Positions 4,375-51,179 of a DNA stretch of 64,000 nucleotides are shown here, in pieces. Position 1 is the first letter of the stretch. Each line of letters begins with the position of its first letter. The notes under the pieces were generated by a model. It was given only the letters and a program-made list of their open reading frames with translations, was not told where the DNA came from and searched no databases. Made by a program: the position numbers and the translations under genes. This DNA comes from Azolla caroliniana. Taxonomy: Eukaryota; Plantae; Polypodiophyta. The DNA is taken from positions 9,424,001-9,488,000 of the forward strand of contig JBHGNT010000021.1 in NCBI GenBank assembly GCA_043228905.1, in the 5' to 3' direction.

Positions 4375-4415
4375 TGGCATGCCTGTGGGACAGTGCCTTT
4401 GCACATCGGACCCAT
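4375..4415 (-). other. tRNA-3'-end-like motif replacing the PPT (G2 copy)
   Basis: Minus strand ATGGGTCCGA-T-GTGC-AAAG-GCAC-T-GTCCCACAGGCATGCCA-AG|LTR. Confidence 0.85.
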
Positions 4416-7890: not shown

Positions 7891-8180
7891 CATAGTGGGA
7901 GCTACGGCGGATCGGAAACGGTCACAGGGTGGTTGCGGTGAGCGTGGTCCTCGCGTCTCGTCAAGGTATTTGGGGAGAAAAGAATCCGCTTTGCACTCAC
8001 GGCAGGTACTACTGAGGTCGCTGATGCGCGGATTTGCCGGGCGTGTTCTTTTGCCTGGCGTTTGACGGACCTTGTTATTGGCCGGTCTTGTCTTGTTGGT
8101 TCTCTAGGCCGTCTGCGGCTAAACATCCATTCGTTGTTGCTCGTCTGTGAGGAAACACAAATCACCAAGCGTGCCAAAAG

Positions 8181-8785: not shown

Positions 8786-10135
8786 TGTCGCAAAGTTTCA
8801 CACATGTGTGTTACTTGGGCGGGACCACGGGGGTCTTGGTCTAGGGAGTACTCAAGGGATAGAGAAGACCCGAGGTTTGCTTTACAACAATACTACTTCC
8901 CTACCCCTTCCCGAGCAAGGTCTCGTTGCCCTTTGTTTTGTGAGGCCGGTGGCTCTCGTTGATCATGACTCGTCGACCTTACGAGATCACCGCACAAGCC
9001 AAGTGACCAAACGGATCAAGCAAGATGATCACGCAACATGAACGAACAAGGGGACGATAACACAAACACGAATGTCCGTACGTCTTTATGAGGAGGAGAG
9101 GTGCATGGGCAAGCCCGAAACGGTCCCTTGTCATAGGACGACCGAACGTACACGAAAGACACAAACACATGCATAAATGCTCGTACGTCTTTATGAGGAG
9201 GAGAGGTGCATGGGCACGCCCGAAACGCTCCCTCGTCACAAGACGACCAAACGTACAAGGAAGACACGAATAAAGAAAGAAGAAGAGAAAGAAACACAAA
9301 TGATATCGACCAAAGAGATAAATACGTGTTCGATTCCAACGCAAGAGGACCCTTTATAAAATAGGGTTTTGTTTACAATGGCAACTTATAGTTAACCACA
9401 AGCTCAATCAAAACATAAATATTAAATGCCCTTAGAGACAAAAGAAAATCCCTACACGGCGAAGATGAACACACGAGCACCACCAAAATGCCAATCCCAA
9501 TGAACTACGACCACTCGAGCGGCGAGCACACATGCTCGCAACGACGAACAAGGCGGAGCAACGTCGAACCAACGAAGCTTGGGTTCACGTGCACTTCGAG
9601 TGCCGACGTGAAGAAGACGAGCACGTGGCGATGGGGGGATGAAGGGGTATGAGATGAAGAGAAGTGGTGAATAAGAAGATGAAGAGCTTCGAAGGAAAAT
9701 TGGTGATAGTCTCCTCCTCCCAAAACGTCCTCCCGAATGAGCCCCCCCTCGACCTCCTTTTATCGGAAAAAACGAAGGGGGGGTCGCCAAATTTGTCTTC
9801 AATGAAAAAGGAATAAAATTCCTTAAATCACGCTGCACTTTAAGTCTAGATTCGAACCATGCACCTCTAGCTAGTAGTCAATGTGACTATCTACTATCCC
9901 ACTAACTCTCTCTTATATACTATATATTTTTATCTCTACAAATTCTTAGCCTGTCTCTCCTCTACATTTTATCTCGCTTGTCTCTTACTTTTTGTGCGGG
10001 CTTCTATGCATCCTTTCCACTCTTTCTTTTCCCTTTTATTTTGCATATGCACAACTAATCGGTTTTGTGTGCACACACATTGCACATGCACATTTTTTAC
10101 CCCTCCGTTTCGCCGGTTTTTCCCACTCTCGATCA
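8786..10135 (-). repeat. G1 5' LTR (~1.35 kb; right end approximate) with an internal 105-bp tandem duplication at 9077-9267
   Basis: TGTCG terminus next to the PBS; TATA-like ATAAAAGG on the minus strand near 9760; abrupt switch to G3 RT at ~10136. Confidence 0.65.
9845..9906 (-). promoter_or_regulatory. tRNA-like A/B-box segment in the G1 LTR
   Basis: Minus strand TAGTGGGATAGTAGATAG...GAGGTGCATGGTTCGAATC. Confidence 0.5.
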
Positions 10136-12784
10136 GCGTCGCTACCGCATGAACCCGAACTACGCGACCCGCGTTAAAGGAAAAATTGACAAACTCCTAA
10201 AGGCGGGATTCATATGGCCAGTTAAACAAGCCACATGGTTAAGTCCGATAGTAGTCATTCCAAAGAAAAACGACAAAATACGAGTATGCGTGGATTACCG
10301 AAAATTAAACGTCGTAACCATTACGGATGCATTCCCTTTACCATTCACCGATAACGTACTGGACGCCGTCGTAGGGCATGACATGTACAGTTTTTTAGAT
10401 GGCTTCAGTGGATACAACCAGGTATGCATGCATCCTAATGACCAAGAGAAGACCGCATTTGTCACGGACTGGGAGTCTATGTGGCAGTCATCATGATGTT
10501 CGGGCTAAAGACGGTGTCGACGACATTTCAACAAACAATCACAGAGATCTTTGGGGAATATATTCCGGCATTCATGCAAGTTGTTTTAGACGATTTTGCG
10601 GTATATGGGAAAAGAACCGACCATTTTACGCATCTGCAAATGTGCCTAGAACGTTGCCGCACCGCACGCTTAGGCATGAATCCCACGAAATGTGCCTTCG
10701 GCATTACCAGCGGGGCTCTCCTAGGCCATATAGTCAGCAAGGGATAGCGGTCGATCCGAACAAAATCTCTGCGATTACTCAAGCCAAAACTCCGACAAAC
10801 GCGAAATCACTCAACCGGTTTTTAGGACAAATACGATGGCATAGTCGGATGATACGATACTTGGCGAACTTCGCCACCCCGTTACATGCCGCCGTGCATC
10901 GGACTCCCTTCCAATGGACTACAACGGAAGACAAGGCGTCTGATGCGCTAAAAATAATGCTCACGCAGGCACCCGTCGTACAGCCACTAGTTGGGGCGAA
11001 CCCATTCCACGTGTTTATAGATGCCTCAAACATTGCAATAGGAAGTGCGCTAATGCAGCTCACAAAACTGAATTGGTACCGGCCAGTGTACTACGCGAGT
11101 TGCAAATTATCAACAGCAAAGCGTAACTATTCCACAACGGAGCATGAGGCATTGGGGATGATCTATAGCATCAATAAATTCCGGCATTATCTATTAGGGA
11201 GGAAATTCACGTTCCACGTAGATCATTCGGCACTACTGTATTTGGTGGAGAAACAAGCACTGACGGGGAAATTGGTGCGATGGATGCTGCTGCTTCAAGA
11301 ATTCGATTTTGTAATTCAGCACCGCCCCGGGTACACAACACGTAGTGGTAGATTTTTTGAGCAGACTTGATAATGGAGAAATGCCGCAGAAGGACGACGC
11401 CGACTTTCCGGACGCAAACATTATGCGGGTAGCAGCACTAGCAGGAAGAATGGAAACGACCTTTCCGGACTGTTGGCTCATGGAAATGACCATACTTTTT
11501 GACTACGGGACTACCCCCACCACAATTACGCATGGACGAGAAGAAACGATTAGCCGTCCGGAGCCGTAACTTCTGCCTAGTAGAAGGAATCTTATATCAC
11601 AAAGGTAGTGATGGTATTTGGCGACGCGGTATACATCAGGATGAGAAAGAAGCGGTCTTACGGGAGGCTCACTACGGAATGGCAGGCGGACACTACGCAG
11701 GCGATGTTATGGCCCGGAAAATATGGCAAGCAGGCCTATGGTGGCCTACTACACAAAAGGACGCATACGAGTATTTTAGAAAGTGCAATTTGTGTCAACG
11801 GATGGGCCATCCCACGGAGGGCGCAAGAATGCCACACCAGCCCGTATTCCTGTTAGGTCCCTTCCAAAAGTGGGGATTGGATTTTGTGGGCCCCTTCACA
11901 CCGGCGGTGGCCCAAACGGGCAATAAATACATATTGGTGGCCACGGATTATTGCACCAAGTGGGTAGAAGCAAAGGCATTACGAGAGAATATGACGGCCG
12001 TCACAACGAGATTCCTTTACGAACACATCTAGTGTCGGTTCGATTGTCCGATTGAGCTTATCAGTGATCAGGGGAGCCACTTTCTCAATACAGTGGTTCG
12101 TGAACTAACACATCATTACGTCGTAGTCCACAAGAACAATACACCATATTATCCACAGGCGAATGGGATAGCGGAATCCACCAACAAGACATTGCAGACC
12201 ATATTAAAGAAAATCGTCAATGAAAATAGAATGGATTGGGATACCAAATTACATAGTGCGTTATGGGCGTACAGAACCAGCTACAAAACAAGCATACAGT
12301 CAACACCGTTTCAACTCGCATTTGGGCTGGAGGTCGTTATACCGGTAGAGTTCTAGATACCAGTTTACGGATTCAGGTACGGGACCGCCTATCGGAAGCC
12401 AAGTCAGAGGAAGTACGGCTCAACTAGCTACTCGAACTCGGCGAAAAACGCATACATAGCATGGCTGTGTTGGAGCAGGAACAACGACGGTGTAAAGCAT
12501 TTGTGGATCGACATCGGAACGTACAAGAAAAGGATTATGCGGTCAATAGAGCGGTACTGGTTTTCCAAACCCACATGGGCCATATGCCAAGAAAATTACG
12601 ATTCCGCTGGACATGCCCGTACTGGATAATAGGAGCGGAACAAGGCACGTTCCAACTGGGCACGTTGGCCTGGGAAGTATTACGACAGAAGGTGAATGGG
12701 TTTCGCCTTAAACTTTATTTGGGACCTACGCCACCTAACCCATTCCCCGCCGGAAAGGACAAAGCCGAAGAATCCGCGGAGTAA
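10136..12784 (+). pseudogene. pol: G3 pol (RT-RNase H-integrase), frameshifted
   Basis: [29 protein letters not shown] motifs across several frames. Confidence 0.92.
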
Positions 12785-12928
12785 GTAGACAGCCCTACTT
12801 GTATCATAGTGTAAAAATAGGCTTGTATGTAACCGTTAGGAAAAAAGAAGAAGAAGAAGATAGCGATGCTATTAAAAAAGGACTAAAAGCATGCACAGAC
12901 TTCTAGACCAAGAACACGCGACACCACG

Positions 12929-15847: not shown

Positions 15848-15851
15848 AGGG

Positions 15852-15892
15852 ATGGGTCCGACGTGCCATGGCACTGTCCCACAGGCATGCCA
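15852..15892 (+). other. tRNA-3'-end-like motif replacing the PPT (G3 copy)
   Basis: ATGGGTCCGA-C-GTGC-CATG-GCAC-T-GTCCCACAGGCATGCCA-GG|LTR at 15895. Confidence 0.85.
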
Positions 15893-27954: not shown

Positions 27955-30900
27955 TGAAGAAAGATTGAAAAATAAGGTTAAGAATGACATGCCGAAAGAT
28001 GGAAATGTAGGCAAATAGGGACACATGACCTATGAGACTAACCCATGCCTTTTACGACTATGCTTTTGGAATTGCAATCGATACCCATGGAATGCGGGAT
28101 TTGGCAAGAGGAGGTCACTGATGACTCGGATATCACACTTCTTGTTGAAACATGGGAGCATGATACTCAAAGGATTTAAGGTTTAGGAAACTATAATGTA
28201 CACTCTTTGATATGGAAGAAAAATCCAAGACAGAAGAGGACAAGCAGGGGTGGCATGTTTGATTAAGAAGGAACTAGAGAAATATGTATCAATCATAAAA
28301 AATGATGAACATAAATGCTACATATGGCTCAAAATAGAAACACCTAATGATTTTCCCACTTTTGTAGTTGGATGTTACATTCCTCGTCAAGGTTCTAACT
28401 TTTATGGTTGTTTGGATAAAGATCAACCTTTTTCCAATGTAGAAGCAGATATTCCTTATTTCAAATCCAAAGAAGAAGTTATTGTCTTTGGTGACATAAA
28501 TACTCGTACAAGAAGTTTCCAACTTGATTCACAAGGTATTTCATGCCACATATTTCAAGGATGCAAGAGGATATGCAAATGTATAGCCGCTCTTCTAGCG
28601 ATGAAAAAGATCCGGACCAATTTGGGAAGTTACTCCTACAAATGTGCAATAGTACCAGATTGCTTATTGCAAATGATATTTCCTTATGGCCCTTGGAACA
28701 CTAATGGTTTTACATGTACAAAACACAACGGAAATAGTGTCATTGATTATGTGCTACTTTCCGAAGGTATTTTGGATCGTATACATAAATTCTCACTTGG
28801 TGAAGGGACACCAGAATCCGATCACAGGCCTTTATGTATTGATCTCAAATATATGCATAGGTCTGATTGTGAGAAGGTTATGGAAGATATTAAACAACCG
28901 CACTTGAGCATGAACCTTAAGCGAGTGCCCATGTATTCCAAGATGGTTGAGGATATGTTACGAGACAAAGATACAACATGGTGCCACACTAGAATGCAAA
29001 TGGGAAGCTTTCAAGAAAGTCATTCTGTCCTGTACAAACAAATGTTTTTCGCCCAACGGCACATCTTGGAACTTCACCAAGAAACATAGGAAAAAATGGT
29101 TTGATAAAGAATGTCGTGAAGCTCGAAAGTGCCTTATGTTTTTGGATGTAGTTAAGGATAAAGAGAATTGCCAAAAGCATTTGCATGAGTATAAAAGCCT
29201 TATTCAAAGAAAGAGAAGAATATGGGAAGTTACTCAACAATTTATCCAAACGGAAGAGAAAGCACATGCATGTGCTAAATTTTGGGGAAATCTAAAGGGG
29301 AAACATGTTGATAGTAATGGTGACTTAACTCTTCACGACTTGTCTATGCATTGTAAGAATTTAGATGAGTTATCTCTTACCGAAAAGATGATGTGTTATG
29401 GTTCTCTTTCACATGTGTCTCCCTTCTTTACAATTCAAGATATATGCATAGGACTTAAGAAATTGGCCTCTCGAAAGGTAAGCGATCTTCAACATATAAA
29501 GCCTGAAATGCTCAAATGGACGGGAAAGGAAGCACATGTATGGATAAGCGATATGTTTAATGATGCATTGCAACATCGTATGCCATACAATTGGACTACA
29601 AATTGGATCAAACCTTTACATAAAGGTGAAGATGTAAATAATGTAAACAACTATCGAAACATCATGGTTGGCTCATTAATGGCAAAACTATTTGGATTTA
29701 TAATGGAATCAAAGATAAGTGTATGGCCTAAAAAAATTGGTAAGAGAGCGTATGGACAAGCTGGCTTTCGAAAACACCATAACACCATTGATCACCTTGT
29801 AACTCTTCGAGTATTCATGGATGAAAGTCGTCTTAGAGGTAAAGGTTTATATTGTTGCTTTGTAGACTTCAAGAAAGCTTTTGATATAGTACCCCGTGAG
29901 CATCTTTGGAGGCGAATGGAAGAACTTGAGGTGCCAAGTGAATATATGCTTGCAATTTCTCAAATTTTTGAGAAGGTTATATGTTGTGTGCGTATGCGAG
30001 ATAAAGTTTTAGATTTTTTCAAAAGTACTATTGGTGTTGAACAAGGTACCCACTCTCACCAACACTATTTGGTCTATGCATTGATGAATTAGAAGAAATG
30101 GTTACCAAGTTTGCAAAGGAAGAATGTGTTCAAGAAGTTGCCATTGGGAATTGTAAAAGATTATGTGCGGAAGCAATAGCAAACCAAACACATAGAAAAT
30201 ACGCAGGTTTAATGGAGAGCTTGAGTATACACAGTACGCGGGAGAGATAGAGAGAGAACACACAAAAACTCAATTCAAAAAATAATACTCAATCTGTACA
30301 TACACCGTGCTCAGTGAGCACCTTTTATACAAGCCCTGACAATCGGGCTAACACAAGTACTGATAGTACTTGACTGCTCATAAATAAGCCTCGACACTCA
30401 CTCCCAAAATTATTCCTTACGAGGAATATCTCTCTAACGGCCTTTCGGTTTACACACTGATATGGCCTCTCGTTACGCACCGGTTTGCGTATCCATTTAA
30501 CACACCGGTCCGGCCTAACCGATCGGTTCCAACCAATCCGGTCCTCGACTTGCTCAGCCGATCCGGCCGATGTTGAGCTTGTCTCTCAACACTCCCCCTC
30601 AAGCTCAACTTGAGGCTCTTTGGGATCTCCCAGATCACCACTCCGGTTCCTCCTGGCTCCACGCCTCACTCGCGCTCCTCGACCTGTTCGACTTCGCGCG
30701 CTTAGACCCTTCCGGTCGGCTTGTCTGCTCCCACGGCCCTTCACAGCTCCCTTGTTGTCGTGGTGTTGGCGCTTCTCCTGCTGCCTTCTTTTCCTTTTGA
30801 CCCTTGGTTGATTCAGTTGTTACCGGCCGGCAAAGAAGGCTTAAGGAGGTCCAAACCAGAGTGTGAAAGGAATAGTTATTCGGGAACTGTTGTAATTAGT

Positions 30901-31334
30901 AGTCTTAATATATATATATTATTATATAAGAAGATGTTGACGGACGGACCGGAATCGGTATGCCGATCCAGATCCGGAACGATTCCTAAAGGTGTCGGTT
31001 GGCACCGTTTTGTATTTCGCACCGGGAACCTATATAAAGGCCCGGTTACAATGTAATCAGGAGTGGATAATTAATAAAGCTTATTGTCTTAATCTTCAAG
31101 TGTTGATTACCGTTCTGTATTTATTGTTATATCTTATGCGTGTTAATTACGGATGGCTAAGTAATCGATTAAGGTCTAATTAAGCGTTGTGCCGTAAGTC
31201 ATTCTGCCGTACCACCCTTTGGTGACGTATCTTAAGTAGACACCCTGTGTTAGGCTGTTGTCCGGCCCTAGCAATAACACAGTTTTTGGCGACCACGATT
31301 CCTACATTATCGCAATGAACAGCGGCAGGAATGG

Positions 31335-33693
31335 ATGACTAGGCCAACAAACGACCCGGTTACAGAGACAGCACGAAGACTTGTTGAACGGAGACGGCGG
31401 CGAGAGGCTTTTCAGCAAGCAGTGGAAGAAATCCGAACGGATCGATCATTTTCCAAAGTGATCCGGAAAGTGGCGGAGGAGTCGCTCCGTCTGCAACAAA
31501 ACGCCTACCCGGACGAAGGAAGCAGCTTAAGCAGCCTCCGGGAAGCGGAAACCCTTCTCGAGGCCTTGGCCGGAAGAGACGGCGAATCCGAAGCATTTTC
31601 AGCGCTAGAATCGGATTCTGAAGGGGGTTACAGTGCGCATACGAACTATCGCAGCAGTAACGACACCCCAGGAGGACCGGAGGACGAGGACGAGGATGCT
31701 TTACCGACACCGGAACCACAGTTGGCAGACCAAGAACCTCCGGTGCTCGTCGTGGAGCAACCTCCGAAGACGGAAGTACACCAGCAAAAACCTCCAACAC
31801 CGGAAGTCGAGCCGGCAACACCAAAGGAAGACCGGCTAAGACCTCAGACACCGACGGAACAGCAGGAAAGACCACCAACACCGCCAGCCCGCGTACCGAC
31901 ACCGGACGACGATATGCCATTCCAGTACTCCAAGTATCGGGATGACACGGACGCAGAGGCTCATGTTCACGCGTTTCAACAAACATGGGAAGCAAAACAT
32001 GTGTCACAACGGTTAACCGCGGCAGAAGAGGAACGATCTAAGGTAGCCGAATTCGGCGTGACATTAGAAGGACCGGCCGCCAGATGGCACCGGACGCAGG
32101 ATCGCAGCACCATCACCACCTTTGCGGACCTAAAAGACAAATTCTTGCACTTATTCTAGAAGGAGGTGGATCAGCGAGAAATGGTGGTCTTATTTTACAC
32201 AATTTGGCAGGACCCCGGCGAGAGCATCCCACAGTTTGTCATCCGGTTTCAACGGATGCACAGTCAGCTTACCCGCGCAGGTCATCGACCGGGTTAGAGA
32301 AATGGAAAAAACAAGCTCTTGGCTAACAATGGGAGCCCTCCAATGAGCATTACCAACCGATGAGGATCTCTATTTCCGGCAAGCAATCCAATGTACGACC
32401 TGCTTGAATTCCGGACACTCGTCACTGGAGTGCACCATGCGGACGCACTGCTTACTCTGCCAATCTACGAGCCACACGATGGACCGGTGCGAATATAACT
32501 TATTGAATCGGTAAGCTCCACCAGTCCGGCAAATCGAGCCACGTAGCAGCCGAGACGAAGAAGATGAATGCTGGCAACGAGAGGAGCGATATCGACCGGC
32601 ACAAGATGTCTGGTACGACAATCGGCGAGACAATTACGACCGGTACAAGAGATACGACAAGTACCGAGATTACAATGGACGGTACGAGAATCACAACCGG
32701 GATCACTGCCCTGGGTATCACCAACGACGGGAATATTACAGGAGGTATGACGACCAACCCCGGCAAGGGTACCACAACAAAAAGAATTTTAATAAAAAAC
32801 AACATTTCAAAAACGGGAGCCACCCACGTGAACCGGAAAAAGGCGCCTCAAGCAGCCAACCAGACCAGAGCCCCACGGTTACCACAAGTCCTCCACCGGG
32901 TACAGGAAACAATGCCGAATCCAGTAACACCCGGAAAGCATATTGCTATTACTGCCGGCAAGAAGGACATTATAGTAATCAATGTCCGGCAAAAAGCTAT
33001 GATAAGTGACCGGCAGTAAACATGGTAGTTGCCGAAGTCGCAGACCTCCAACAGGTCACCACAAGGTCGAAGGGGAAGACTACGGAATGGGAGACACAAG
33101 AGGTCATCCGGAAACAGGCAACAGAATGGGTGAAAAAGGCAAATGAGCGAAACGTAGCAGAACTCGCGCAATAGAAGGAGAACACCGAAGAGCTCGCCGG
33201 CGGCAGTCAGTCCGAAAACGTGACATGGCAGGTATTGTAGGAATGCCAGATCACGCTGCCGTTAGGATGACTCTTGCAGCTAGTACCAAGATTCATAGAA
33301 GGACTCAAGTCTGGCATGACGACAGGCAGAACACCACCGGCTCCAGCATTCTTCCCAAATCCGGAAGAAGGACCGGCCGTGGTGGACACCAACAGTCCGG
33401 CAGTTACGGCCATTGTGAAAGGGGAAGAACTCCCCGGCACGATAATAGACGGAGGCTCTGGCATTAATGTAATCAGCCTTCGAACATGCGATGCTCTTGG
33501 AATCCGAGAGTGGGAGCCATGTCTGTTCTGGCTCCGAATGGCGAACACAAGCTCGGTGCGACTGACAGGTTTAATACGGAACTTGGAAGTAACCATCGGG
33601 GGCCACACATTCCGAATCTCAGCCGTAATTTTCCAGTTGCAGGCTGAAGGAGCGTACCCATTATTGTTGGGACACCCTTGGTTAAAAACGGCA
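31335..33693 (+). pseudogene. gag: G4 gag-protease (disrupted)
   Basis: Homologous to G2 gag (EFGVTLEGPAARW); knuckle CYYCRQEGHYSNQC near 32943; protease 33274-33690. Confidence 0.85.
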
Positions 33694-35489
33694 CAACAGG
33701 CAGCACCGGCAAGCCCCGTCACCCAAGAGCCAGAGATACAAAGGCCAACCACCCTAGCCGGCCAAGAACAAGCAGACAAGGGGCGGCTAGCCGAAACACA
33801 CTCAGAGCCGGAACGACAAAGTGGTCAGCTGGCAGAACCAGAAGCGCAGCTTGACGCAGAAAGGCGGGACCAGCCACCGGCGAGTGAACCCATCAGCCAA
33901 CTCTCCGTGCAAGCGCAACAACAGTGCACCGGCAGCCAATAGCTCCAGTGGATAGGAGACCAAATTGCCGGAGTAGTTGGATGCATAGAGGCGGAGGAAA
34001 GAGCGCAAACGAAACGGTTGCTCGTCAACCAATGAACTGGAGATGGCCCGGTCAAGGATCCGGTGCCTAGAACAAGACTTGGATCGGATCACAGGAGAGA
34101 TGGCCAGAATGGCCTTAACCACAACACAGATCCAAGCACCGGTGACTCCGGTGGATGTACAGAAGAATAAGACCCGGGAGACACAAACTATCCCAGGGAA
34201 AGAGGCGGCGCAAGCCCCAGAGCTTGCGGAATTACGAGATGAGCTCGCCGCACAAGAAGCATTACGGAGCCGCGAACGCGACTTGAAGAAGGCAGCCGAA
34301 GAAGAATTAAGAAAGACTGTTGAGAACCTTTGCCATGCAGAGGAAAACCTACGTAAAGGACATCATGCTTACGACTGGCTGAAGGAGGAAAAAGAGAAAG
34401 TGTTGCAGGAAAAAGACAAGCGGCGACGGATGGCTGAAGGAAGGGCTCCGGCAACAGAAGGACAGGGAGGACCGCGCGCGCCGTTAGATAAACCAACGAT
34501 TGAAGCAAAAGACCGATGATTTCAATCATCTGCATCGGGACTACAAGCAGCTGGAGACAGAGCATAAGCAACAACAGGAACGGATGGCCGAGCTCCGGCA
34601 AGAGGTTGATAGGGCCACAACGGCACTCACCGAAGAACGAGCGGAAAGTTCTAGGCTATTGGAGGAAGCGGCGAATGACCGTATGGAGCTCCACAAACAG
34701 AACCATGAAGACAAGGAAAGAGCGTCAATGGTACTACAGAGGTTGCAAACAACCTATCAAACTCAATTGTCGCATTATAGGGAGCAGGAGGCGGACACGG
34801 TTCGGATCATCAAGCAGTTGAAGGAAGAGCGACAAGCCGCAGAAAATAAATCACAGATGGGAGCCGAACGGATCCAGTGCATCCTCCGGTCATGGCTCAC
34901 TAAAACCAAAAGCTTGATTGATGACAGCTCTATGCGTTGGTGGGCAAAATGGGCGCAGAATACCGCGGAACTCCAATTGCTTAGGGCGGACGTTGAAAAC
35001 CGTCGAAAGGAGGGCGACGACTGCTATATGCAGACCTCGGAGGACTTCACCACCATCAGGGATGAGCTGGCGGAAGATTTCACAGCCCTGACGGATGAAC
35101 AATTGGTGCAGGTCCGGCAGCTCGTAGCTCAACTGGACGATAATCGGCTGGAGGCTCAAATCCAGTTCGAAAGCTATGAGTGGTCCCGGCTCCAGGAAGA
35201 AAAAGCGCGAAAGGCGGCAACGATCAACCTTAGTGATGAGGAACCGTCGCCGGTGCAAAGACCAGAGGGGGAACAGGCCGGGGTCAGTCAACCACAGACA
35301 ACTCTGACGAAGGAACCAACGACGGAAACGCCAGTGCTAGAGCAACAAACGGAGCCACAGCCACAAACGGAGCAACAACCACAGCCACAAACGGAACAAC
35401 AGCAGCAGCCACAGTAGCAACAACATATTCTCGATGAGGCATTGGAAATTTTGGATCAAAGCATTCTGGACATTTTGGACGAAGCGTAA
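33694..35489 (+). pseudogene. G4 extra coiled-coil ORF (C-terminal part)
   Basis: ORFs 34043-34519 and 34500-35417; WWAKWAQNTAELQLLRADVENRRKEGD; ends SILDILDEA-stop. Confidence 0.75.
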
Positions 35490-35501
35490 AAGGACTGGAT
35501 A

Positions 35502-35541
35502 GTGGGTTCGACGTACAAGGTACTGTTCCACAAGCGTGCCA
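35502..35541 (+). other. tRNA-3'-end-like motif replacing the PPT (G4 copy)
   Basis: GTGGGTTCGA-C-GTAC-AAG-GTAC-T-GTTCCACAAGCGTGCCA-TG|LTR at 35544. Confidence 0.85.
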
Positions 35542-36791
35542 TGTGTTACCGGCTGGCAAAGAAGGCTTAAGGAGGTCCAAACCAGAGTGTGAAAGGAATA
35601 GTTATTCGGGAACTATTGTAATTAGTAGTCTTAATATATATATATATATATATTATATAAGAAGATGTGGACGGACGGACTGGAATCGGTATGCCAATCC
35701 AGATCCGAAACGATTCCGTAAAGGTGCCGGTTGGCGCCGTTTTGTATTTCGCACCGGGAACCTATATAAAGGCCCGGTTACAATGTAATCAGGAGCGGAT
35801 AATTAATAAAGCTTATTGTCTTAATCTTCAAGTGTTGATTACCGTTTTGTATTTATTGTTATATCTTACGCGTGTTCATTACGGATGGCTAAGTAATCAA
35901 TTAAGGTCTAATTAAGCGTTGTGCTTTAAGTCATTCTGTCGTACCACCCTTTGGTGACGTGTCTTAAGTGGACACCATGTGTTAGGCTGTTGTCCGGCCC
36001 TAGCAATAACATCAGTGTATCCGAATCAAACATCTGAACCGACTCGGCTACCTCCGATCAGTTTTCGCTCTCGTCCGAGTTGGCTGTCTCCAACTCGTCT
36101 TCTCACCCTTGACGGCGTCATCTCCCCCATGCTTGGTTGGCTTCGGCTCTTTTTTCGGATGCTCCCCTTATGTCCGCTTTGAGACTCTTCCGCGGATCCG
36201 CCCTTGGCTTCGTCATCCGACTCGGCGTTGCGGTCTTCTCCCCCTCAAGTTCGGCACATCGAGGTGATGCAACCCAAGCGCACCCGAGAATTGTTGTAAC
36301 TTGTCCAAACCATACTGAACATACTGAAGTTCGACTTCACCAAAAAGGACACGCTCACGGACAAAATGGTAGTGTACCTCAATGTGCTTGGTCCGGGCAT
36401 GGAAAACGGGGTACTTCGCGAGCTGGATGCTGCTAACGTTGTCGCAGTAAATCGTCGTTGGATCGGACACCTCCTCTTGCAGGTCCTTAAGTAGTCACTT
36501 CAACCATATGGCTTCGCATGTCACAATAGTTGTTCCTCGGTACTCAGCTTCGGTGCTCGACAGTGCAACTGTCGGCTGCTTCTTACTGCTCCACGCTATT
36601 GCGGCACTCCCAAGAGAGAACGCGTATCCGGACGTGGATCGGCGAACGGCGATCGGCGATCGGCGATCGGTGATCGGCGGCATTGCCAACCCAATCCGCA
36701 TCAGTGTAGCCGACCAACTGCGAGGCTGTACCGGTCTGATATAGCAGTCCTCGGTCCTTAGTGTTGCTTAGGTACCGCGGTACGCGTTGCG

Positions 36792-39700
36792 TGTCGAATA
36801 CAAATGTATAATGGACGTATTCACACTATCCTCTTAGAGAGCCCAAGTTCGGGCTATTTCTGTAAATAACGTAAAGGGCAGTTACCCTAAGTGAGTCACT
36901 ATATAAAGTGACCTTGTAACCTTTTGTAAAGGTTGGTTGTTCATTGTTGTAACGGTTGCCCCTTTATGAATATAGATATATTCTTTGTGCCTCTCTCTCT
37001 CTCTGTGTGTACGTAATTTGTTCTTGCCTCTCTCATACGCAGGTATTTCTTCCTTACAGATTCATACTGTGTGATCTCTTCCGCACTGACAGCCTTGTTC
37101 ATTCCCTACATTTGGTATCAGAGCTTGGATGTCCTTCATCCCGCTGCCGGCCGCCATTCGAATCTTTGGATCACAACATTCTGTTTTTTTTTTTTTTTGT
37201 ACTTGAAGAAACAGAGAAGAGAGAAGAAGAAGAAAAATGAGGCTTGCATCTCATCGCGTTAGATCATCTTCACTTGGAGTAAGCCAGCCGGCTGTACTCT
37301 GTTCCTCGTGATCGTAACCGCTCAAGGTGAAATCCCCTTGTGCAACATTGACACAATCGTGCTCCACTTGGTTAAACGGCATCCGAACAGGTCACCGAAC
37401 GCTGCTCGCCGCCCGTTGTAACCACTCGGTGCAGATCGGTCTCAAGACAACAACCCCAATTCGTGCTTCATCCAGCTGATCGACATTCGGGAGGATCAAT
37501 TGGATCCGTCTCTCTCGTCGCTGCAGTCACCCGAAGCAGAATCGGTCCAGACAATCGGTTTCAATAATCGGTATTTGGCATATATATTCGGAAGCGAACC
37601 GGGCTCACTCCAACTCGGCAACATTCGGGAAGACCAGTCGGCTCTGTCCCTCAAGTTACCGGAGTCAATTCGAGGAAGTTCAACAATACATATATCCGAA
37701 ACCGAACCGACTCGGGTTCAAATCCGACTAGAACGATATCGGGTGAGCCGACCGGCTGCACTCCAACAAGGTTCATAGTCAACTCCGAACCGAGCTTCGT
37801 CAACCGAAACCAAATCTGATGGCATCAACATCCGGCTCATCGGAAATGAGTCTAAGGAGGTTCGATGGTTCGAATTTCAATTTTTGGAAGGAGCAAATGC
37901 AGGACTATCTTATAGTCAAGGGTCAGATCGATCCGATTGACAATGAAACTGCTCTAGAAATATACAAGGCAAATGAGTGGCAGAAGCTGGACAGAATCGT
38001 CTACACCACGATTCAGATGCACCTGTTGGAGTCAGTGTACTTCACAGTGCAATCGTGCACAACAGCCTTCGAACTTTGGAAGAAGTTGTCGGAAACCTAC
38101 GAAAAGAAGGTCGCCTCAACGAAGATGTATTTGATCCGGCGCCTCTACAACTTGCGGATGAAAGACTCCGATTCGGTTCAGGCACACCTTAACGAGTACG
38201 AAAGTTTGAGCTCCCAAATCTCGTCATAGGGGACGACAATCGAGGATGAGCTCAAAGCAATGATACTCATGAGCAGTCTCCCCTCCTCTTGGGAAACCTT
38301 CGTTACAACTGTGTGCGACGCTTCTACGACTGCCATCAAGTACTCCGAAGTCACAAGTGCAATCCTGACTGAAGCAGCTCAAAGAAAGTCTTTCACCAAA
38401 GACTCGGCAGAAGAAGCCTATGTAGTACAAGGTTCGACCGACCGATCGAACAACCGGGGAAGAAATTCTTCCCGACCGCCGACAAATCAGCGAAGCCGCA
38501 ACAAGTCCCGGGAAACCCGAATTTGCAACTACTGCAAGAAACCGGGACACATCAAGGCCGACTGTCGGGTACTCAAGTCAAAGACGGACAAAGCTCAGAG
38601 AGCTGATCAGAGGAGTAACCGGCATGAGGAAGTCAACTACGTCGGCTCTTCAACCGAGATATTGACGACCGACCCGAACATATTGTCCATAGAGAATCCA
38701 GTCGAATCAGAAGTTCTGCTTACGACTGAGGAATCGAGCACATGGCTTCTGGACTCGGACGTGTCGTATCACGTGACACCTCACCGATCACAGTTTCGGC
38801 AATATTCGGACCGACACTCCGACTCAGTTCGAGTCGGAAATTCGCAGCACTGTGCTATCATCGGAATCGGCACCATAGAGCTCAACCTTCCGGGTGGCTC
38901 TACACTCGTACTACACAACGTCCGACATGTTCCTGAGCTCTCACGACCCTTGATCTCCGTCGGACAACTTGATGAAACTAGCATCCGTGCTAGTTTCTCA
39001 TCAGGAGGGTGGACACTCCACAGAGGGAACCTCCTGCTTGCTAGAGGACCAAAGGTACACTCATTGTACCCTTTGTATGTCACACTCAGAGAGGGTGACT
39101 TATTTCTAGTAGATATCCCTGTGTCATCCTTATGGCATGGACGACTTGGACACCTCAGCAAGGCCGGCATCACGCACCTATCCAGAGCCGGATACATCCC
39201 GAAACTCTCCTTCTCGGACCATCAGTTTTGCGAGCATTGCCAGTATGGCAAACAGGTAGCCGCATCACACCCGACATCAGCACCAAGAGAGTCCAGCCCG
39301 CTCGATTTGGTCCACTCGGACGTCTGTGGCTCGATGCCACATCAGTCACTCGGTGGTGCCTCGTACTTCGTCAGTTTCATTGACGACTCGACTCGGAAGG
39401 TGTGGGCTTACCCCATCAGAACCAAAGATCGAGTGTTCTCGATCTTCTCAGATTGGCTCGCAATGGTCGAAAACCAGACCGGTCGGAAACTGAAGTGTCT
39501 CCGAACCGACAATGGAGGTGAGTTCAAATCTGATGAATTCGTCAAATTTTGCCGAGAACGCGGCATTAGACGTGAATATACGGCACCATATAGTCCGGAG
39601 CAGAATGGAATCGCAGAACGCATGAATCGGACAATTCAAGAACGCGTTGTATCCATGCTCTAACACTCCGGACTGTCGAATGGCTTCTGGGCAGAGGCTC

Positions 39701-41911
39701 TACTCACGGCAGTACACATAATCAATATGTCGCCAAGTAGACCTCTAGGACTTAAGATACCTCAGTAAATATGGAGCGGCAGAAAGCCGAATTATGAGAA
39801 GCTGAGGATTTTCGGTTGTGAGGCATACGCCCTCATACCGAAAGACGACCGCCGAAAACTCGAACCGAGATCATGGAAATGCGTTTTCCTCAGGTATGGA
39901 CCCGACGGCGAGATCGGATACCGACTCTGGGACCCCGAGCACAGGCAAATTGTCCGAAGTTCGGACGTCGTGTTCAACGAGTCCACTATGCACAAAACGG
40001 CCGAAAGGCCTATTGAAGTTCGAAGGGTAATATTTTCCGAAGTGCCAACCCTTCATGACGGCCCAGCACACAACACGAGACCGGTTTCACAGGTAACCGA
40101 CTTCTCTCGCACCGAATCCACAGATTCGGCACAGCCGAATGGCTTGACTTCCGACCATCCGACATCGACACCCGGTGCGACCAGTCCAGTCATACCTCGA
40201 AGATTCGAGAGACTGTCGCAACCTCCGGAGAGGTACTCTCCCGGAATTTTCTTCACCGACGCTGGCGAACTGACGTCCTACGAAGAAGCATCGGCAGCTG
40301 CCGATTCAGCCACCTGGCATCTGGCAATGGAGTCGGAAATGCATTCCATCCGCGCCAACAAGACTTGGGATCTGGTCGACTTACCGAAGAATCGACGTCC
40401 TCTTCCTTGCAAGTGGGTCTATAGAATAAAGGAGACGTCTGAATCGACCACCCCAAAGTACAAGGCTAGATTAGTTGCGAAGGGATTTCGACAAGAATAT
40501 GGCGTTGACTTCGACGAAATCTTTTCACCAGTGGTGAAAATGACAACCCTTCGTTTCATGCTCGGTGTTGTGGCTGCCGACAATTTGGGGCTGATTCAGG
40601 TAGATGTGAAAACGGCATTCCTCCACGGTGATCTAAAGGAGGAAATCTACATGGAGCAGCCGAAAGGCTTTGTGGCCACCGGTCAGGAACATCTAGTCTA
40701 CCGACTCAGGAAGAGTCTCTACGGCCTGAAACAGGCACCCCGATAGTGGTACAAGAAGTTTGACGATTTCATCCAGTCGGTCGGCTTCTCCAAGAGCGAT
40801 GAGGACCATTGCCTCTTCACCAAAACAACTCAAGACGGTTCTCCCGTCTTCCTCATCATCTACGTGGACGACATGCTACTCTCCGGTCGGCATACCGGAG
40901 AGCTCACCGAACTCGTTCGGAAACTGCGATTGAAGTTTGCCATGAAGGACCTCGGTTCGGCAAGACACATACTCGGAATGAAGATTAGTTGGAATCACGC
41001 CAAAAGACAGCTTTTTCTGTCTCAAACCGACTACATCGGACGTGTCTTGGAACGCTTCAACATGCAATCGGCCAAGTCTGCTTCAACCCCGCTCCCCATT
41101 CATCTTCGGCTTTCTCAGCAAGACTGCCTGACATCCGGTCCAGAGGTGGAAGACATGAAGTCGGTACTGTATGCACCGGCAGTAGGCTCTCTGATGTACA
41201 CGATGGTTGTGACACGGTCTGATATTTCTCACGTCGTAGGAGTCATCAGCAAATTTATGCACAATCCAGGCCGATCGCACTGGAACGCAGTCAAGCATGT
41301 GTTCAGATATTTAGCTGGCACAAAAGACCACGGCATCCTTTTCAGTCCGAACTCAACTTCAGGCGTAGCCGGTTACACCGACTCGTACTTCGCCGGCTGT
41401 GTGGACAGTCGCAAGTCAACAACCGGATATTGCTTTAAATTCGGCAATGGAGCAATCTCGTGGAAGTCGAAACTTCAGGAGTGCATAGCCACCTCAACAA
41501 CCGAAGCAGAATATGTAGCTGCCTCCGACGCAGCAAAAGAAGCTCTATGGCTCGGTCGGCTGGCGCACACGTTTCGGTAAGTCGACTCCGACTCGGCTCC
41601 AGTTGTCTACAGCGACAGTTAGAGTGTTGTTGCTTTGTCGAAAAATCTGGTTCATCACAACGCATCCAAGCATATCGAAGTTCGATATCACTTCGTTTGG
41701 GACTGCGTCATTTCCGAGAAAATCGGTTTAGAGAAGATATCCACAACCGATAATGTCGCAGATGGAATGACCAAGTGTCTTTCGGTACACCGGTTCCGGT
41801 CTCTTCGGCAACAGATGGGCGTAACAACATATCGGTCCGGTTGAAGCCGGACATAGTGCGGGACGGTTTCGGACAACATACATCGGTTCACTAACGATCG
41901 GCTTCAGCTTT
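36792..41911 (+). mobile_element. C3: Ty1/copia element (family of C4), decayed, 3' LTR deleted
   Basis: 5' LTR 36792-37110; PBS 37113-37124; gag-pol 37819-41844 collinear with C4 but with several stops; breaks ~65 nt after the stop codon. Confidence 0.92.
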
Positions 41912-44900
41912 TCGCATTCTTTACATCCATCTGATGTAAGTGCCACCCCTTTGCCGCAGCTACCCCGAGCAAAACACGGACGGTCGTCATCTTCGCGACC
42001 AGCGCAAACGTCTCATCATAGTCGATGTCGTGTTTCTGTGCGTAGCCTTTTGCTACTAATTGGGCCTTGTATTGGTTGACTGAGTCTTCGGTGTTGTACT
42101 TGACCTTGTACACCCACCTACATCCGATCAGCTTCACACCCTTCGGTGCATCAACCAGGTCCCAGGTCTCGTTTGCCGGCAATGCGTGCATTTCTTCCTC
42201 CATCGCAGCACGCCAATTCGCGTCCTTCGCCGCTTCTGCGTAGCTCTCTGGCTCACGCACTTCCGCTACAGGGGTCATGTACGCATAATGATGTGCCATG
42301 TACTCATTGTATCTGAACCGCACAACTGGGTTCTTCTGGTGGGTAGATCAGCGTAATTGGTCATTAGCCAATGTTGAGGTCTTCTCGGCTGACGCGGACT
42401 TCGCTCTTGAAGACCCATCACCGCTTCCCTCGGAGTCGGACTCGCGTCGATCCGACTCGTTCCTATCTGTGTTGTAATCCGACACCTTCTTCTTTGCGCG
42501 TAAGCAGTCTCCTCAGCTTCTTGCGTGGGAAATGCATGGCCGAGTCTCCACTACTCGCCGGCTCTTCATCGGACTGGTCAATCCGACTCAGTCGTCCATT
42601 CGTTCCGCTTAACCGAATCGAAATCGGACTCTCTTCGAGGGTCTCGATTTCAGGCTCATCCAGAGGCATCTCGGCCTCACTGACCTCATCATCAAAACTC
42701 GGATTGGAGGTGAGGTGAGGTGTCGGAGGCAAGTACCAGGACGCAGACTCATCAAACACAACGTCGCAGCTCATGCGCGCTTGTTTGGTGCGAGGGTTAT
42801 AGCACTTATAGCCCTTTTGCTCGTCCGAATAGCGACCAAGATACACTTCTCGGCTTTCACGTCCAACTTCCTCCTTTTATCCTTTGGCACATGCACATAC
42901 GCAATGCTCCCGAAAACTCGTAAGTGTCGCAGGTTCGGCTTCCTTCCGAAATATAGCTCATACGTCGACACTTTGTCTCCGATCCGGTTCTAGATGTATA
43001 CCACGGTTCGTACCGTCTCGGCCTCTTCCAGCATTGCCCGTGCCGCTTCCACGACCGACCGATTTTTCCTCTCGGCCACGCCGTTTTGCTCCGGCGTGTA
43101 CCTACAACTAAATTCGCGCCGAATTCCCATCTATTGTAGATAACCATTGAATTGACCAGAAAAGTATTCTTTTCCGCCATCCAACCGTAGGCACTTGATC
43201 TTCCTTCCTGTTTCCGTTTCCATGAACCCTTTCAAGTCCCGGAAATAGTCGAAGACTTCGCTCTTCCTCTCAATGAGGTAGATCCACGTGTGTCGCGTGT
43301 AGTCGTCGATGAAGGAGACGAAATATCGGCTCCCGCCAAGACTAACGTTTTGTGTCGGACCCCACACATCGGAGTGTATCAAGTCGAGCTTGTTCCGGCT
43401 TGGGTTACGCTCGTTGGGGAAGGGAAGTCGGTGTTGCTTCACAAGCTGGCAGGTTTCACAAATTTGTGTCTTCCGGCCACTAAATTTGGGTAATCCAAAC
43501 ACCACTTGTTTCGATTGCAGGTCTTCAAGCCGCTAGTAGTTGACGTGGCCTATCCTCTTGTGCCATAAGTTGATGTCCGACTCGACTTTTTGTCCCTTCG
43601 CGAACATTGCGGTACCACCGTCAATAGAGTCGAGGATGAACATCCTCCCATCTCTGCGCCCTTGCGCAATAACACAGCCTTCTTCCTCAATGAAGCACCC
43701 GAGGTGTGTAAACCGAACCTGCATCCCCTGGTCGACGATCTGCCCGACCGACACCAAATTCTTCGTGATGGTTGGGACCTGTAACACGTTATTAAATTTC
43801 CCTTTCTGTCCGACATGGCTCAAGGGAACTTCACCGACATTCGCAATCGGATGCGGAGTGTCATCTCCGGTTGCGACTACTCCTGGTTGTGTCGGTTCCT
43901 CAAGATATGAGAACCACTCCTTGTGGCAAGTCATGTGGTTTGACGCACCGAAATCGACGTACCACACCTCCGACTTCGGGGTGATCTTCTTCATTGAGTT
44001 TGTTTTGTGTCTCTTCACGAAGATTGACCCTTTTCCGGCTTCTCTGGATCCTTCGGCGTATTGCGATCATTGCCGATTTCCTTTGTCGATCTGTCCGGAA
44101 CCTGTTCTGAACCCGGTTCCCTCCGAATCGGCGCACTTTTTCCAGCACTCGCTCTCCTTGTGGCCTTTCTTGCCACAGTACCAGCATTTTGCGGCGGATT
44201 TCCCTTGCCGGTTCTCGCCGCCTCGACTCCCCCTATTTCCGGAGAGTCCGGAATTGCTATCGGCATCACTTCGGTGCCTTCTTCCTTGATCCCGTCGGCC
44301 ACCTCCATTACGTACCGACTCAACTCGTCCGCCACGACCACGGGGCCTATCTCCCTCCATGTACAGCATCTTGTTGTCGGCATGCATGTTTGTCGATGCA
44401 CCCGCATGGTTCTCCTCTATAAGCAGCATCGATTGTAAGTCGAAGAACGACGGCGTATTCTCCCGTGTACACACAGCAGTTCAGAACGCTCCGAACATTG
44501 ATGCCAAACCCCCGAGACAGACCTGGACCATCTCGCTTTCCTCGATGTTCACATCGATGGAAGCTAAGGAGTCGCATATGTCCTTGATCGTATAAATCGC
44601 GTTGTCGTAGGTTGCTCAACTCCTGTCGGAGCTGAAGCTTCCTAGCTGTGGTGCTCGCGGCGAAGATCTTCTTCAGATTTTCCCACGCACCCTTCGGCGT
44701 TTTTGCATCCCGAACGTAGTTTAACCATTGTTCGCCCACACAAGACGCGAAACAGTATAGCACTCTACTCGCCGATTGTTCCCACACCAAGAAGACTTTG
44801 TGTGTTGAATCAGGTGTTGTGTCATTTGCTCCATCAACATTACTCTAGTAACCGTGTCCGAGCAAGTACTGGTGCATCTTGTAGGACCAAGATGCGTAAT

Positions 44901-46707: not shown

Positions 46708-46760
<53 letters not shown>

Positions 46761-46764
<4 letters not shown>

Positions 46765-48976: not shown

Positions 48977-51179
48977 CGGGGTGGTGTGCCACATAGAAGC
49001 AGAAGAAAGACCACACGTGGACCGGTTGCTCGCCACAACCGAAGAACTAGAGAAGGCCCAGTCAAGAATCCGGCGCATGGAACACAAAATGGAAAATACC
49101 AAAGAAGATGCGGCTAAGCTAGCATCGAAGGACCAAAACAATTAGAATCGGTGGCACCGATGAGTGTTCAGAATAACAAGACCCCGGTGACTGAAACAGT
49201 CCCAGATATGAATAAGGCACAGGAACAAGAACTCGCCATGTTGAAAGAAGAATTGGAAGCCCAAGAGGCCTTAAGGGCTTAGAGAATGTGAAGGGAAGAA
49301 GGCGGCGGGGGAAGAACAAAAGAAATTAGCCGAAAGCCTCCGGCAAGCCGGAGAAAGCCTATGAAAAGGTCATCAAGCATATGACTGACTGAAGGAAGAA
49401 AAAGAAAATACCCTGCAGGAAAAGGACAAACTCCGGCACTCGGCGGAAGTAGAGATCGAGCGACTCAAGGAAGAGCTCCGACAACAAAAGGACGGGGAAC
49501 ACCGTGCTTTCCGTCTTATCAATCAAAGGCTGAAACAAAAAACAGACGACTTTGATCGGCTGCACCGGGATCACAAACACTTGGATGCGGAACACAAGAA
49601 ATTGATCACCGAAAGTGACCGGCAGCAGGAGAAGTTACGGGAACTTCGGGATGAGGTTAACCGGACAACGGCGGCCTTGGCGGAGGAACAGTCGAAGGGG
49701 GCTGAAGTAGTGAAAAGACGGGCGGAAGCGGCGAAAGAACGGATGGAGTTGACCCGGCAGCACTTTGAGACAACGGAACACGCTACAATGGCTCTAAATA
49801 AAGGTCAGACTACCTATAAGACACACCTCATGCACTACAGAAGCCAAGAAGTGGCAACCGCGAGCCTTATCAAACAATCAAAGGATGAAAAACAGGCCGC
49901 GGAGAATAAGTCGAAGATAGGACTGGGGCGAATCCGTGATCTGGTGCTGGCATGGAGAGACCGGACGAAGAGACTAGTGGAAGAAAGTTCGGTTCAATGG
50001 TGGTCTAAATGGGCTAAGCAGGCAGTAAAGTTACAATTGCTGAGAGTGGATGCAGAGAACCGGAGGAAGGACGGCGACAATTTCTATAAACTGGACGAGG
50101 AGAACATTGTAGCCATAAGGGAGGAATTGTCAGACGACTTCCTATCATTAGCCGGGGAACAATTGCCAACGGTGAGGCGATTGGTGGAAGAGCTAGACGA
50201 CGACCAGCTAGATACACAACTCCAGTTCGAGCGGTATGAACGAGAACGATGACGGCAAGAGGTGGTTAGAAGAACTGCGGCGATCAATATCAGTGACAAA
50301 GAGCAATCTTCGGAGCAGGCGCCGAATGAAGCCGGAACTGGGGAAAGCCAGTCGAACAAAACTCCAGAGGAGCAGCCGAAGGAGGAAAACCTGCACACTA
50401 GAAACCATCAACAAGAGGAGCCCAAACCAACAGAACCAAAATCGGAAGCCTCGAGGCCAGTGGAACCGGAGAGACCAAAGCAGCAGGAGCAGGAGGAGCC
50501 CAAACCAACAAAACCAGAACCAGAAGCCTTGAGACCAGTGGAACCAAAGAGACCAGAGTAGCAGCAACAGATGACGGAGCAGCTACCTGATGAACGATTA
50601 GAACCCCTCGACAGAGCATTTTGGACATTTTGGAGGAAGATTGAAGGGCGAACCATGGGATTCGACGTACAAGGTATTGTCCCACAGGCGTGCCATGTGT
50701 TGACCGGCAAAGACTTAAAAGCGGGATAAATTCCAGAATGTCAAAGGGATAATTATTTTAGAACCAGGAGTTGTTACCTATAATTATGATATATTTTGCG
50801 AAGCGAACAAACGGACCCGTAATCGGTATGCCGATCCAGATCCGGACCAGTTCGTGGCCGGTTGCCGGTTGGCACCGGTTCGTACCCTGAGCCAGTGACC
50901 TTTAAAAGGACCCGGTTAGATTGCAATCAGATAGCGGTTTATTAATGAAAGTGTTGTTGTCTACAACCTATTTAATCTTTGAAGCTTTGGCTAATTACCG
51001 TTTTGTGCTTAATAGAATCTGTCTTACGCGTGTATTACGATCCTTAACCACACCGGTTAGTAGCCTGTTAGGAATACGTTTGTATCACGGTCTATGCCTA
51101 CCCCAGTTGTAACACCCTTTGGTGAAGTGTCTTAGAGGGACACCTTGTGTTAGGGCTAATCCTGCCCCAAGGAGTAACA
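48977..51179 (+). mobile_element. G5: 3' remnant of a G4-related gypsy element (extra ORF + 3' LTR 50698-51179)
   Basis: WWSKWAKQAVKLQLLRVDAENRRKDGD; ends QSILDILEED-stop at 50644; LTR TGTTGACC...GTAACA shares blocks with the G4 LTRs. Confidence 0.85.
50655..50695 (+). other. tRNA-3'-end-like motif replacing the PPT (G5 copy)
   Basis: ATGGGATTCGA-C-GTAC-AAG-GTAT-T-GTCCCACAGGCGTGCCA-TG|LTR at 50698. Confidence 0.85.

Follow-up and report, generated by a model that had tools for sequence, protein, structure and literature searches.

Plus-strand DNA synthesis from a polypurine tract (PPT) is, to our knowledge, regarded as universal for retroviruses, for retrotransposons with long terminal repeats (LTRs) and for pararetroviruses, and annotation tools such as LTRdigest depend on this tract. 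Here we describe a 64,000-nucleotide (nt) stretch of Azolla caroliniana DNA (assembly GCA_043228905.1, contig JBHGNT010000021.1, positions 9,424,001 to 9,488,000; hereafter the window, with positions counted from its first letter) in which four copies of a Ty3/gypsy element family, called G2 to G5, have no PPT and carry in its place a module derived from the 3' part of a transfer RNA (tRNA), tRNA-Arg(UCU). A tRNA-derived module in this position points to a way of starting the plus strand for which we found no published description. The best reading of the sequences is that the module is a plus-strand priming site which has replaced the PPT in this Ty3/gypsy lineage.

With PPT priming, for example at the PPT/U3 junction of Ty3 (PMC5371799, PMC3185511), the module shares its position right before U3, no farther off than the 2 nt trimmed by integrase, and like a PPT it defines the LTR boundary in every copy. 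It differs in that it is not purine-rich (the longest purine run is 3), has a tRNA as its source, includes a covarying hairpin and terminates in CCA, and the RNase H-resistant rPu:dPy hybrid of a PPT is impossible on it. The second system to compare is tRNA priming at the 5' primer binding site (PBS), with which the module has in common the tRNA (Arg-UCU in most subfamilies) and a complementarity of 9-11 nt to its 3' terminus. The layout is the mirror image of a 5' PBS, with the LTR, a few nt and TGG... read on the minus strand. However, the template at the module would be DNA, tRNA positions 49-58 and an inserted hairpin are kept, one tRNA nucleotide is missing and, going by the standard replication scheme, the module would not be re-copied from the tRNA in each cycle. 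Structures resembling tRNAs and ending in CCA are also known from plant RNA viruses and the Neurospora Mauriceville retroplasmid, where they stand at the RNA 3' end and are full mimics of the acceptor and T arms. These too are genome-encoded, CCA-bearing and linked to the start of replication, whereas the module is internal and is not a complete cloverleaf, lacking the 5' acceptor strand, the D arm and the anticodon arm; ARAGORN reports no tRNA in the window and the Rfam tRNA model has no match at the module. The Helenus terminal-repeat retrotransposons in miniature (TRIMs; PMC10886601) are likewise LTR retrotransposons that have recruited tRNA-derived sequence, but there it serves as an RNA polymerase III promoter within the LTR, and a normal PBS and PPT are kept. 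The original prediction, made from the window alone, had remarked that no LTR element of this kind was known to it as described, and our literature search agrees with it: no account was found in which tRNA-derived sequence takes the place of a PPT or a tRNA primes the plus strand, with most subscription journals outside the coverage of the search. None is given in a survey of plant LTR retrotransposons (PMC6317226), in the Helenus/Ajax paper (PMC10886601) or in reviews of plus-strand priming.

The whole module is about 40 nt long, and the consensus of the four window copies reads (G/A)TGGG(A)TYCGA, C or T, a hairpin with a 4-bp stem and a 3-4-nt loop, T, GTYCCAC, ARGCRTG, CCA and NN, followed by the TGTT of the LTR. 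In G4 (35502..35541, + strand) it consists of GTGGGTTCGA, which corresponds to tRNA positions 49-58, then C, the hairpin GTAC-aag-GTAC, T, and GTTCCACAAGCGTGCCA, which corresponds to positions 59-76 minus one C; it scores 73.8 bits with our covariance model. The spacer TG (35542..35543, +) separates the CCA from the 3' LTR (35544..36011, +, TGTT...AACA). The target site duplication (TSD) TCAGT follows right after at 36012-36016 and also stands right before the 5' LTR (30818..31279, +), at 30813-30817, a perfect 5-bp TSD; the LTR boundaries of G4, like those of G2, are fixed independently of the module. G2 lies on the minus strand, with its module at 4375..4415 (hairpin GTGC-aaag-GCAC, spacer AG), LTRs at 8620-8181 and 4372-3933, the latter being the 3' LTR, and a TSD of GTCGG/TTCGG that matches at 4/5 positions. 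The 5' LTRs of both G4 and G2 begin with TGTT and have no module. The other two modules are on the + strand, in G3 at 15852..15892 (hairpin GTGC-catg-GCAC, spacer GG, LTR from 15895) and in G5 at 50655..50695 (hairpin GTAC-aag-GTAT, spacer TG, LTR from 50698); neither has a 5' LTR within the window, and their LTR boundaries rest on homology. The four sites and their spacers, TG, GG, TG and AG for G4, G3, G5 and G2, each followed by an LTR that begins with TG, are exactly as originally predicted, as are the LTR boundaries of G2 and G4 that had been placed by LTR pairs and TSDs. A 22-nt degenerate pattern finds 4 matches in the 64-kb window against 0.03 expected, and the covariance model, trained without G2, G3 and G5, finds exactly these 4 sites with E-values of 1e-19 to 1e-26.

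That the module stands at the 3' end of the internal region follows from the coding content, as the coding strand of the open reading frames (ORFs) of G2, G3 and G4 is the tRNA-sense strand of the module. The decayed reverse transcriptase (RT), RNase H and integrase of G3 (10059..12781, +) fix both the orientation and the Ty3/gypsy (Metaviridae) domain order, with RT_RNaseH at 10399-11370 followed by Integrase_H2C2/rve at 11499-12032. In G2 an RVT_1 domain is on the minus strand, and the ORFs of G4, gag-like and protease-like with a DGGSG motif, are on the + strand. G4 and G2 each have two TG..CA LTRs with a TSD, and a tRNA-complementary PBS follows the 5' LTR at a distance of 4-7 nt, either TGGCACGCYTGG.. 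(Arg-UCU type) or TGGCGACCACGA. Dozens of related contigs have the extra ORF of the family end in a conserved peptide, ..EPSILDIFDDA* or ..ILDILEED*, with the module 10-25 nt past its stop codon. When the other strand is read, the module mimics the classic layout of LTR, 2 nt and TGG... PBS; we considered whether it could be a misoriented 5' PBS, and this is ruled out by the orientation of the ORFs and Pfam domains and by the stop codon of the last ORF just upstream.

A PPT of the kind found in Ty3/gypsy elements is missing from the module-bearing members. The lack of a purine tract beside the 3' LTR, first noted for the four window copies, holds for these and for the wider set, in which the longest purine run within the last 25 nt before the 3' LTR is 3 in 66/66 distinct members listed, a value that the search pattern partly forces. 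A PPT-bearing member, which would have spoken against the priming role proposed for the module, did not turn up among the family copies examined. For comparison, an intact Ty1/copia element at 51302-56669 has an ordinary PPT at 56363-56371, GGGGGAG abutting the TG of the LTR, and a tRNA-iMet PBS with a 2-nt spacer. The claim that the other elements of the window have normal PPTs stands for this Copia element, the only one checked. It has an uninterrupted polyprotein of 1343 amino acids and LTRs that are identical over at least 300 nt, interrupts the 3' LTR of G5, and is probably a very recent insertion judging by its sequence.

A displaced or cryptic PPT could still do the priming, either about 45 nt upstream, where the last ORF has its purine-rich end, or at the short AGG/AAG of the tail, with the module as a passenger relic of an old template switch. 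The purine-rich sequence GGAAGARGATTRAAGGG does lie just upstream of the module in G2, G3 and G5. However, this box is the end of the last (extra) ORF, ..ILDILEED*, which in G4 survives in decayed form at 35460..35489 (+; ..SILDILDEA, stop 35487-35489). A purine run upstream is lacking in several subfamilies, and the median run of 6 in the family compares with 5 for the window background, which the analysis treats as equal. A displaced PPT at the box was rejected on these grounds, the box being the acidic C-terminus of the extra ORF and not conserved across subfamilies. More directly, a plus strand starting upstream would place the module within the 5' LTR, and the TSD-flanked 5' LTRs start with TGTT and have no module, so that plus strands cannot begin upstream of it. 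The purine-rich stretch upstream that had been named in advance as a start site which could overturn the idea is coding sequence and not a displaced PPT. A passenger, moreover, would not be expected to surpass the rest of the element in conservation and depth of coverage. We regard a displaced or cryptic PPT as very improbable.

The source of the module can be named because a related contig, L023, carries in the PBS position an antisense copy of a full tRNA-Arg(tct) including its CCA (2079-2154, minus strand; found by ARAGORN, 54.5 bits with the Rfam tRNA model). Against positions 49-76 of this tRNA the module is identical at 24-25/28 positions, which bears out the resemblance to the 3' end of tRNA-Arg(UCU) that had been noted at the outset. 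Two differences are constant. One C is missing at the junction of T stem and acceptor in every member (CCCAC-C-RGGCGTG becomes CCCAC-RGGCGTG), and 13-14 nt (C, hairpin, T) are inserted immediately after A58, at the 58/59 boundary. Because of the missing C only 9-11 nt, and not 17-18, match the 3' end of the tRNA without a break, with 6-7 nt more beyond a 1-nt bulge. An authentic tRNA 3' end with the extra C was found before no LTR in the window or the loci, except for the PBS copy of L023. The predicted mirror-image PBS has held up in part: a tRNA-derived tail does occupy the PPT position across a large and diverse lineage, but its match to the terminal 17-18 nt is imperfect by one C. A sister copy, L063, has a PBS stretch of only ~13 nt where L023 has the full tRNA, and the L023 copy looks like a read-through of the whole primer during plus-strand strong-stop synthesis; if so, the block at A58 can at times be passed, by this RT or on this tRNA.

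At the 5' end, short-read contigs that span the LTR into the PBS show TGGCACGCCTGGTG.. or TGGCACGCTCGGT.. 4-5 nt past the LTR in many members, and from these sequences most subfamilies share tRNA-Arg(UCU) as the 5' PBS primer. This tRNA should then be present in the particles. G2 is of this type, with the PBS TGGCACGCTTGGTGA at 8162..8176 (minus strand), 4 nt (CTTT) past the 5' LTR at 8620-8181, and the first 11 nt of the PBS are complementary to the tail of its module. In the G4-type subfamily (G4, L121, L122, L128) the PBS has changed to TGGCGACCACGATTCC, found in G4 at 31287..31302 (+), 7 nt past the LTR; the module is not complementary to this PBS, and the Arg-type module has been retained. 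The spacer between the end of the 5' LTR (..ACA) and the TGG of the PBS is unusually long and T-rich, CTTT, CAATT or CAGTTTT, that is 4-7 nt (8177-8180, 31280-31286; L023 2074-2078), unlike the spacer of the 3' module, which is strictly 2 nt.

These PBS data bear on a reading in which the module acts on the RNA, with pairing between its single-stranded tail and the 5' PBS that circularises or dimerises the genome, as in Ty1 CYC5/CYC3 and the Ty3 bipartite PBS, or that, as in Tf1, lets the minus strand be self-primed; the plus strand would then start from some unrecognised short primer. This reading draws on the 11 nt at the start of the PBS TGGCACGCCTG, to which the tail CAGGCGTGCCA is complementary in G2 and in many members from metagenomes. 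Both precedents share something with the module. The Ty3 bipartite PBS and Ty1 CYC5/CYC3 (PMC5371799) place a sequence related to the tRNA near the 3' LTR, in Ty3 likewise in a Ty3/gypsy element, and Tf1/Sushi elements self-prime with a segment of their own RNA complementary to the PBS, as the module is in G2-type members. But the 3' PBS of Ty3, within U3, has a sequence complementary to the tRNA, whereas the module has the sense of the tRNA and lies just outside U3, so it is not the antisense 3' segment of a Ty3-type bipartite PBS. The Tf1 transcript has this segment as its first 11 nt, while the module is found where the internal region ends, before the 3' LTR, and its complementarity to the PBS is 11 nt in the G2 type and none in G4-type members. 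The G4-type subfamily keeps the module although its PBS TGGCGACCACGA is not complementary, and the retention of an Arg-like module where the 5' PBS has changed sets its role apart from minus-strand priming. Contigs that hold both tail and PBS display no covariation between them, and neither the invariant 2-nt distance to the LTR nor the missing PPT is explained. An action on the RNA therefore seems improbable to us, if less so than a hidden PPT.

We next turn to how widely the module is conserved, the priming site being our preferred reading of it. Public metagenome contigs were scanned with TGTYCCACARGCRTGCCA, a pattern that contains neither the LTR bases nor the 5' half of the module. At least ~65 further distinct family members, mostly from one set of ENA assemblies, are among the matches listed. 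Their LTRs and flanks are unrelated, yet a GTGGGTTCGA-like half and a hairpin stand upstream of the core, which extends to a diverse set of members the earlier claim that the motif is conserved between window copies with very different LTRs. Among 75 loosely filtered candidates listed, about 10 of them chance matches, 57 read NN and TGTT after the CCA; most others show the variants TGTA, TGTG, TATT or TCTT, a shift due to an indel (L024) or an interruption by other sequence (L044, L108). The commonest spacer among the candidates listed is TG (46). A sampling free of the motif was possible through homologues of the extra ORF: the module is present in 5/5 contigs that extend past the stop codon (L121, L122, L127, L128 and L129, the last of which ends inside the module), with tails of CGGGCGTGCCA, CGGACGTGCCA or CGGGTGTGCCA, then TG or AG, then TGTT.

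A further view of conservation comes from k-mer depth, for which contigs of four DNA runs from two organisms were aligned on 35250-35850. The summed depth is 140,000-209,000 over 35523-35543, compared to 6,000-10,000 just upstream and 38,000-47,000 at the start of the LTR, so that the module has 15-20x the depth of the upstream flank and 3-4x that of the LTR start. The smaller run X6 has the same relative peak, and loose contig ends diverge at 35502 and at 35547-35550. Such a peak means that the module is common to far more copies and families than either of its flanks. By protein search the nearest named relatives are an element of Marchantia paleacea, at 41% in RNase H, and Copia elements of angiosperms, at 44%. 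The Marchantia element (L130; MUAA02000074.1, 1998843-2019628), the nearest named relative of the RNase H of the lineage, is young and of ordinary architecture, ~7 kb long with LTRs that are 99% identical. It has GGGGTAAA and then TG before its 3' LTR, a tRNA-Asp-like PBS and no module, which makes the replacement of the PPT specific to the lineage described here. L130 is the only distant relative that could be scored; L131-L133 have no module match, in contigs that stop short of the 3' ends.

The variation within the module separates two parts, as seen in a model-guided alignment of 75 matches. The hairpin, part of the motif as first described and now placed at the 58/59 boundary, has double (compensatory) changes in 4/4 pairs and 92.7% of cells paired. 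Its pair 2 is U-A in 38, G-C in 24 and C-G in 2 members and its pair 3 is G-C in 56 and A-U in 11, and the covariation of 0.194 against 0.089 for shuffled alignments (0/500) collapses once the partner columns are slid. The distance from the hairpin to the CCA is constant. The outer helix that resembles a T stem is conserved in sequence without covariation, and one large subfamily (22/72) carries at 53-61 an A.C that is not compensated. In the half of the module that the search pattern left unconstrained, positions 50-52 and 54 are ~97% invariant, and the variants at positions 49, 53, 55 and 57 are almost all G>A or T>C, changes that preserve pairing with the tRNA as rG.dT or rU.dG wobbles. Variation is free at position 58, the site of the hairpin insertion (A 36, C 21, T 11, G 3), so an A is present in only 36/71 and, together with the A.C pair and the lack of covariation in the outer helix, this is not what a mimic of the T loop looks like, in which T54, psi55, C56, R57, A58 and the G53-C61 pair would be conserved. 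In cytosolic tRNAs position 58 is 1-methyladenosine (m1A), for which Watson-Crick pairing is impossible. The free position 58 and the mostly G>A/T>C variants weakly favour annealing of a tRNA over structural mimicry. An apparent excess of G.T wobbles (23 vs 2), taken at first for folding of the hairpin in the plus sense, was discarded as a scoring bias.

The covarying hairpin is what gives weight to the reading in which the RNA of the element itself primes the plus strand, in cis. Here the RT, while making the minus strand, would stall at a structure, either the T-stem-like helix or the hairpin, which start 11 and 19 nt upstream of the CCA end, and RNase H would cut the template after the CCA with the same specificity by which the tRNA primer is taken off the opposite end. 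In the hairpin the element would encode a replacement for the m1A58 roadblock. The spacing of polymerase and RNase H sites in retroviral enzymes is 17-18 bp. For the RT of Ty3 the sites are ~13 bp apart and helix anomalies shift the cut 10-12 bp downstream (PMC5371799). Upkeep of the hairpin by compensatory change at all four pairs and its constant distance from the CCA would both be expected, a folded tRNA need not anneal, and the imperfect match of module and tRNA is accounted for. On the other hand, no RT is known to select a non-purine primer in this manner, the 4-bp hairpin is a weak roadblock, and no reason is left for the identity of the tail to a tRNA end or for a CCA exactly at the cut. 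The outer helix, uncovarying and with its unrepaired A.C, and the free variation of A58, which is essential to a true T-loop fold, also argue against a structure of this kind. We consider a primer in cis unlikely, although it is the alternative we take most seriously.

We return to the module as a priming site for a tRNA. Under the standard replication scheme the CCA end is quite probably the primer terminus, which would fix the boundary of U3 with integrase trimming 2 nt, and this trimming would have the LTR always begin 2 nt past the CCA. As to the primer itself, we tentatively favour packaged host tRNA-Arg(UCU) over RNA of the element, an assignment that from the sequences is possible but falls somewhat short of probable. 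The element would package the host tRNA-Arg(UCU), already the 5' PBS primer in most subfamilies. Once minus-strand DNA is made and RNase H clears the template RNA, the complement of the module (TGGCACGCCTGTGGGAC...) would be exposed, and a second tRNA-Arg could anneal to it, its last 9-11 nt pairing contiguously and the strands of the T arm pairing on either side of the looped-out hairpin. The natural CCA-3'OH of the tRNA would then be extended through U3-R-U5, RNase H would strip the tRNA as at the other end and integrase would trim the 2-nt spacer. A slightly more doubtful proposal is that one host tRNA primes both DNA strands, the minus strand from the RNA PBS and the plus strand from the mirror PBS on minus-strand DNA. 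A host tRNA as primer would require an Arg(UCU) isodecoder ending in ..GGCGTGCCA. It would account for a tail that stays tRNA-like and ends in CCA, and for an Arg-like module where the 5' PBS differs, and since m1A58 cannot pair, position 58 would be unconstrained and tolerant of a looped-out hairpin. No new enzymology is needed. RTs also extend tRNA annealed to a DNA PBS in vitro. The RTs of LTR retroelements normally extend an RNA primer, that of the PPT, annealed to minus-strand DNA (PMC5371799).

Several points weigh against priming by a host tRNA. The evidence base for priming is assembled contigs of DNA runs, and tRNA-Arg(UCU) is known here only from a decayed retro-copy. The contiguous complementarity is just 9-11 nt, with one C missing in every member, and the search pattern makes the 18-nt core look more conserved than it is. 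Simple annealing of a tRNA does not require a covarying hairpin or the retained 5' half of the T arm, and both could reflect a structured RNA acting in cis. The G.T and A.C pairs of the hairpin, 16 vs 11 in a fixed register, give no indication of the strand that folds.

If the priming site is what we take it to be, plus-strand initiation can be rebuilt from the machinery of minus-strand priming, and this in a plant lineage that is large and evidently successful. Were one host tRNA to prime both strands, the PPT and its specialised recognition by RNase H would be dispensable, and one tRNA and one primer-removal specificity would define both ends of the linear cDNA. Such elements would be a natural system for studying primer choice by RT/RNase H, and their failure in PPT-based annotation would be explained. 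The 40-nt module is in addition a compact signature that can be used to detect the lineage in any genome.

Some further features of these elements and of the window can be described. A large extra ORF follows the integrase, at 12900-15850 in G3 and 34043-35489 in G4 and also in contigs L121-L129. The protein is coiled-coil and Q/E-rich with a conserved acidic C-terminal peptide (..EPLDQSILDILDED*); it matches no Pfam family, and a search of a protein atlas returned weak coiled-coil look-alikes only. G4 (30818-36011) has gag-like, protease-like and extra-ORF sequence in an internal region of 4.26 kb that contains no RT, RNase H or integrase, and as its architecture and PBS are shared with L121, L122 and L128 it looks like part of a propagating non-autonomous subfamily. 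In G2 an internal deletion (4420-4480, minus strand) has left the beginning of RNase H (..RKLSAAERNYSTTE) fused directly with the final codons of the extra ORF, the joint being a short CAGAGCC common to both. The G4 LTR contains an (AT)n microsatellite whose length differs between the 5' copy (30907-30925) and the 3' copy (35627-35655), and reads appear to be cut there. Finally, elements of the long interspersed nuclear element (LINE) type, with RVT_1 and Exo_endo_phos domains, are found at 16598-18736 and 45349-48463, two related copies that are ~95% identical.

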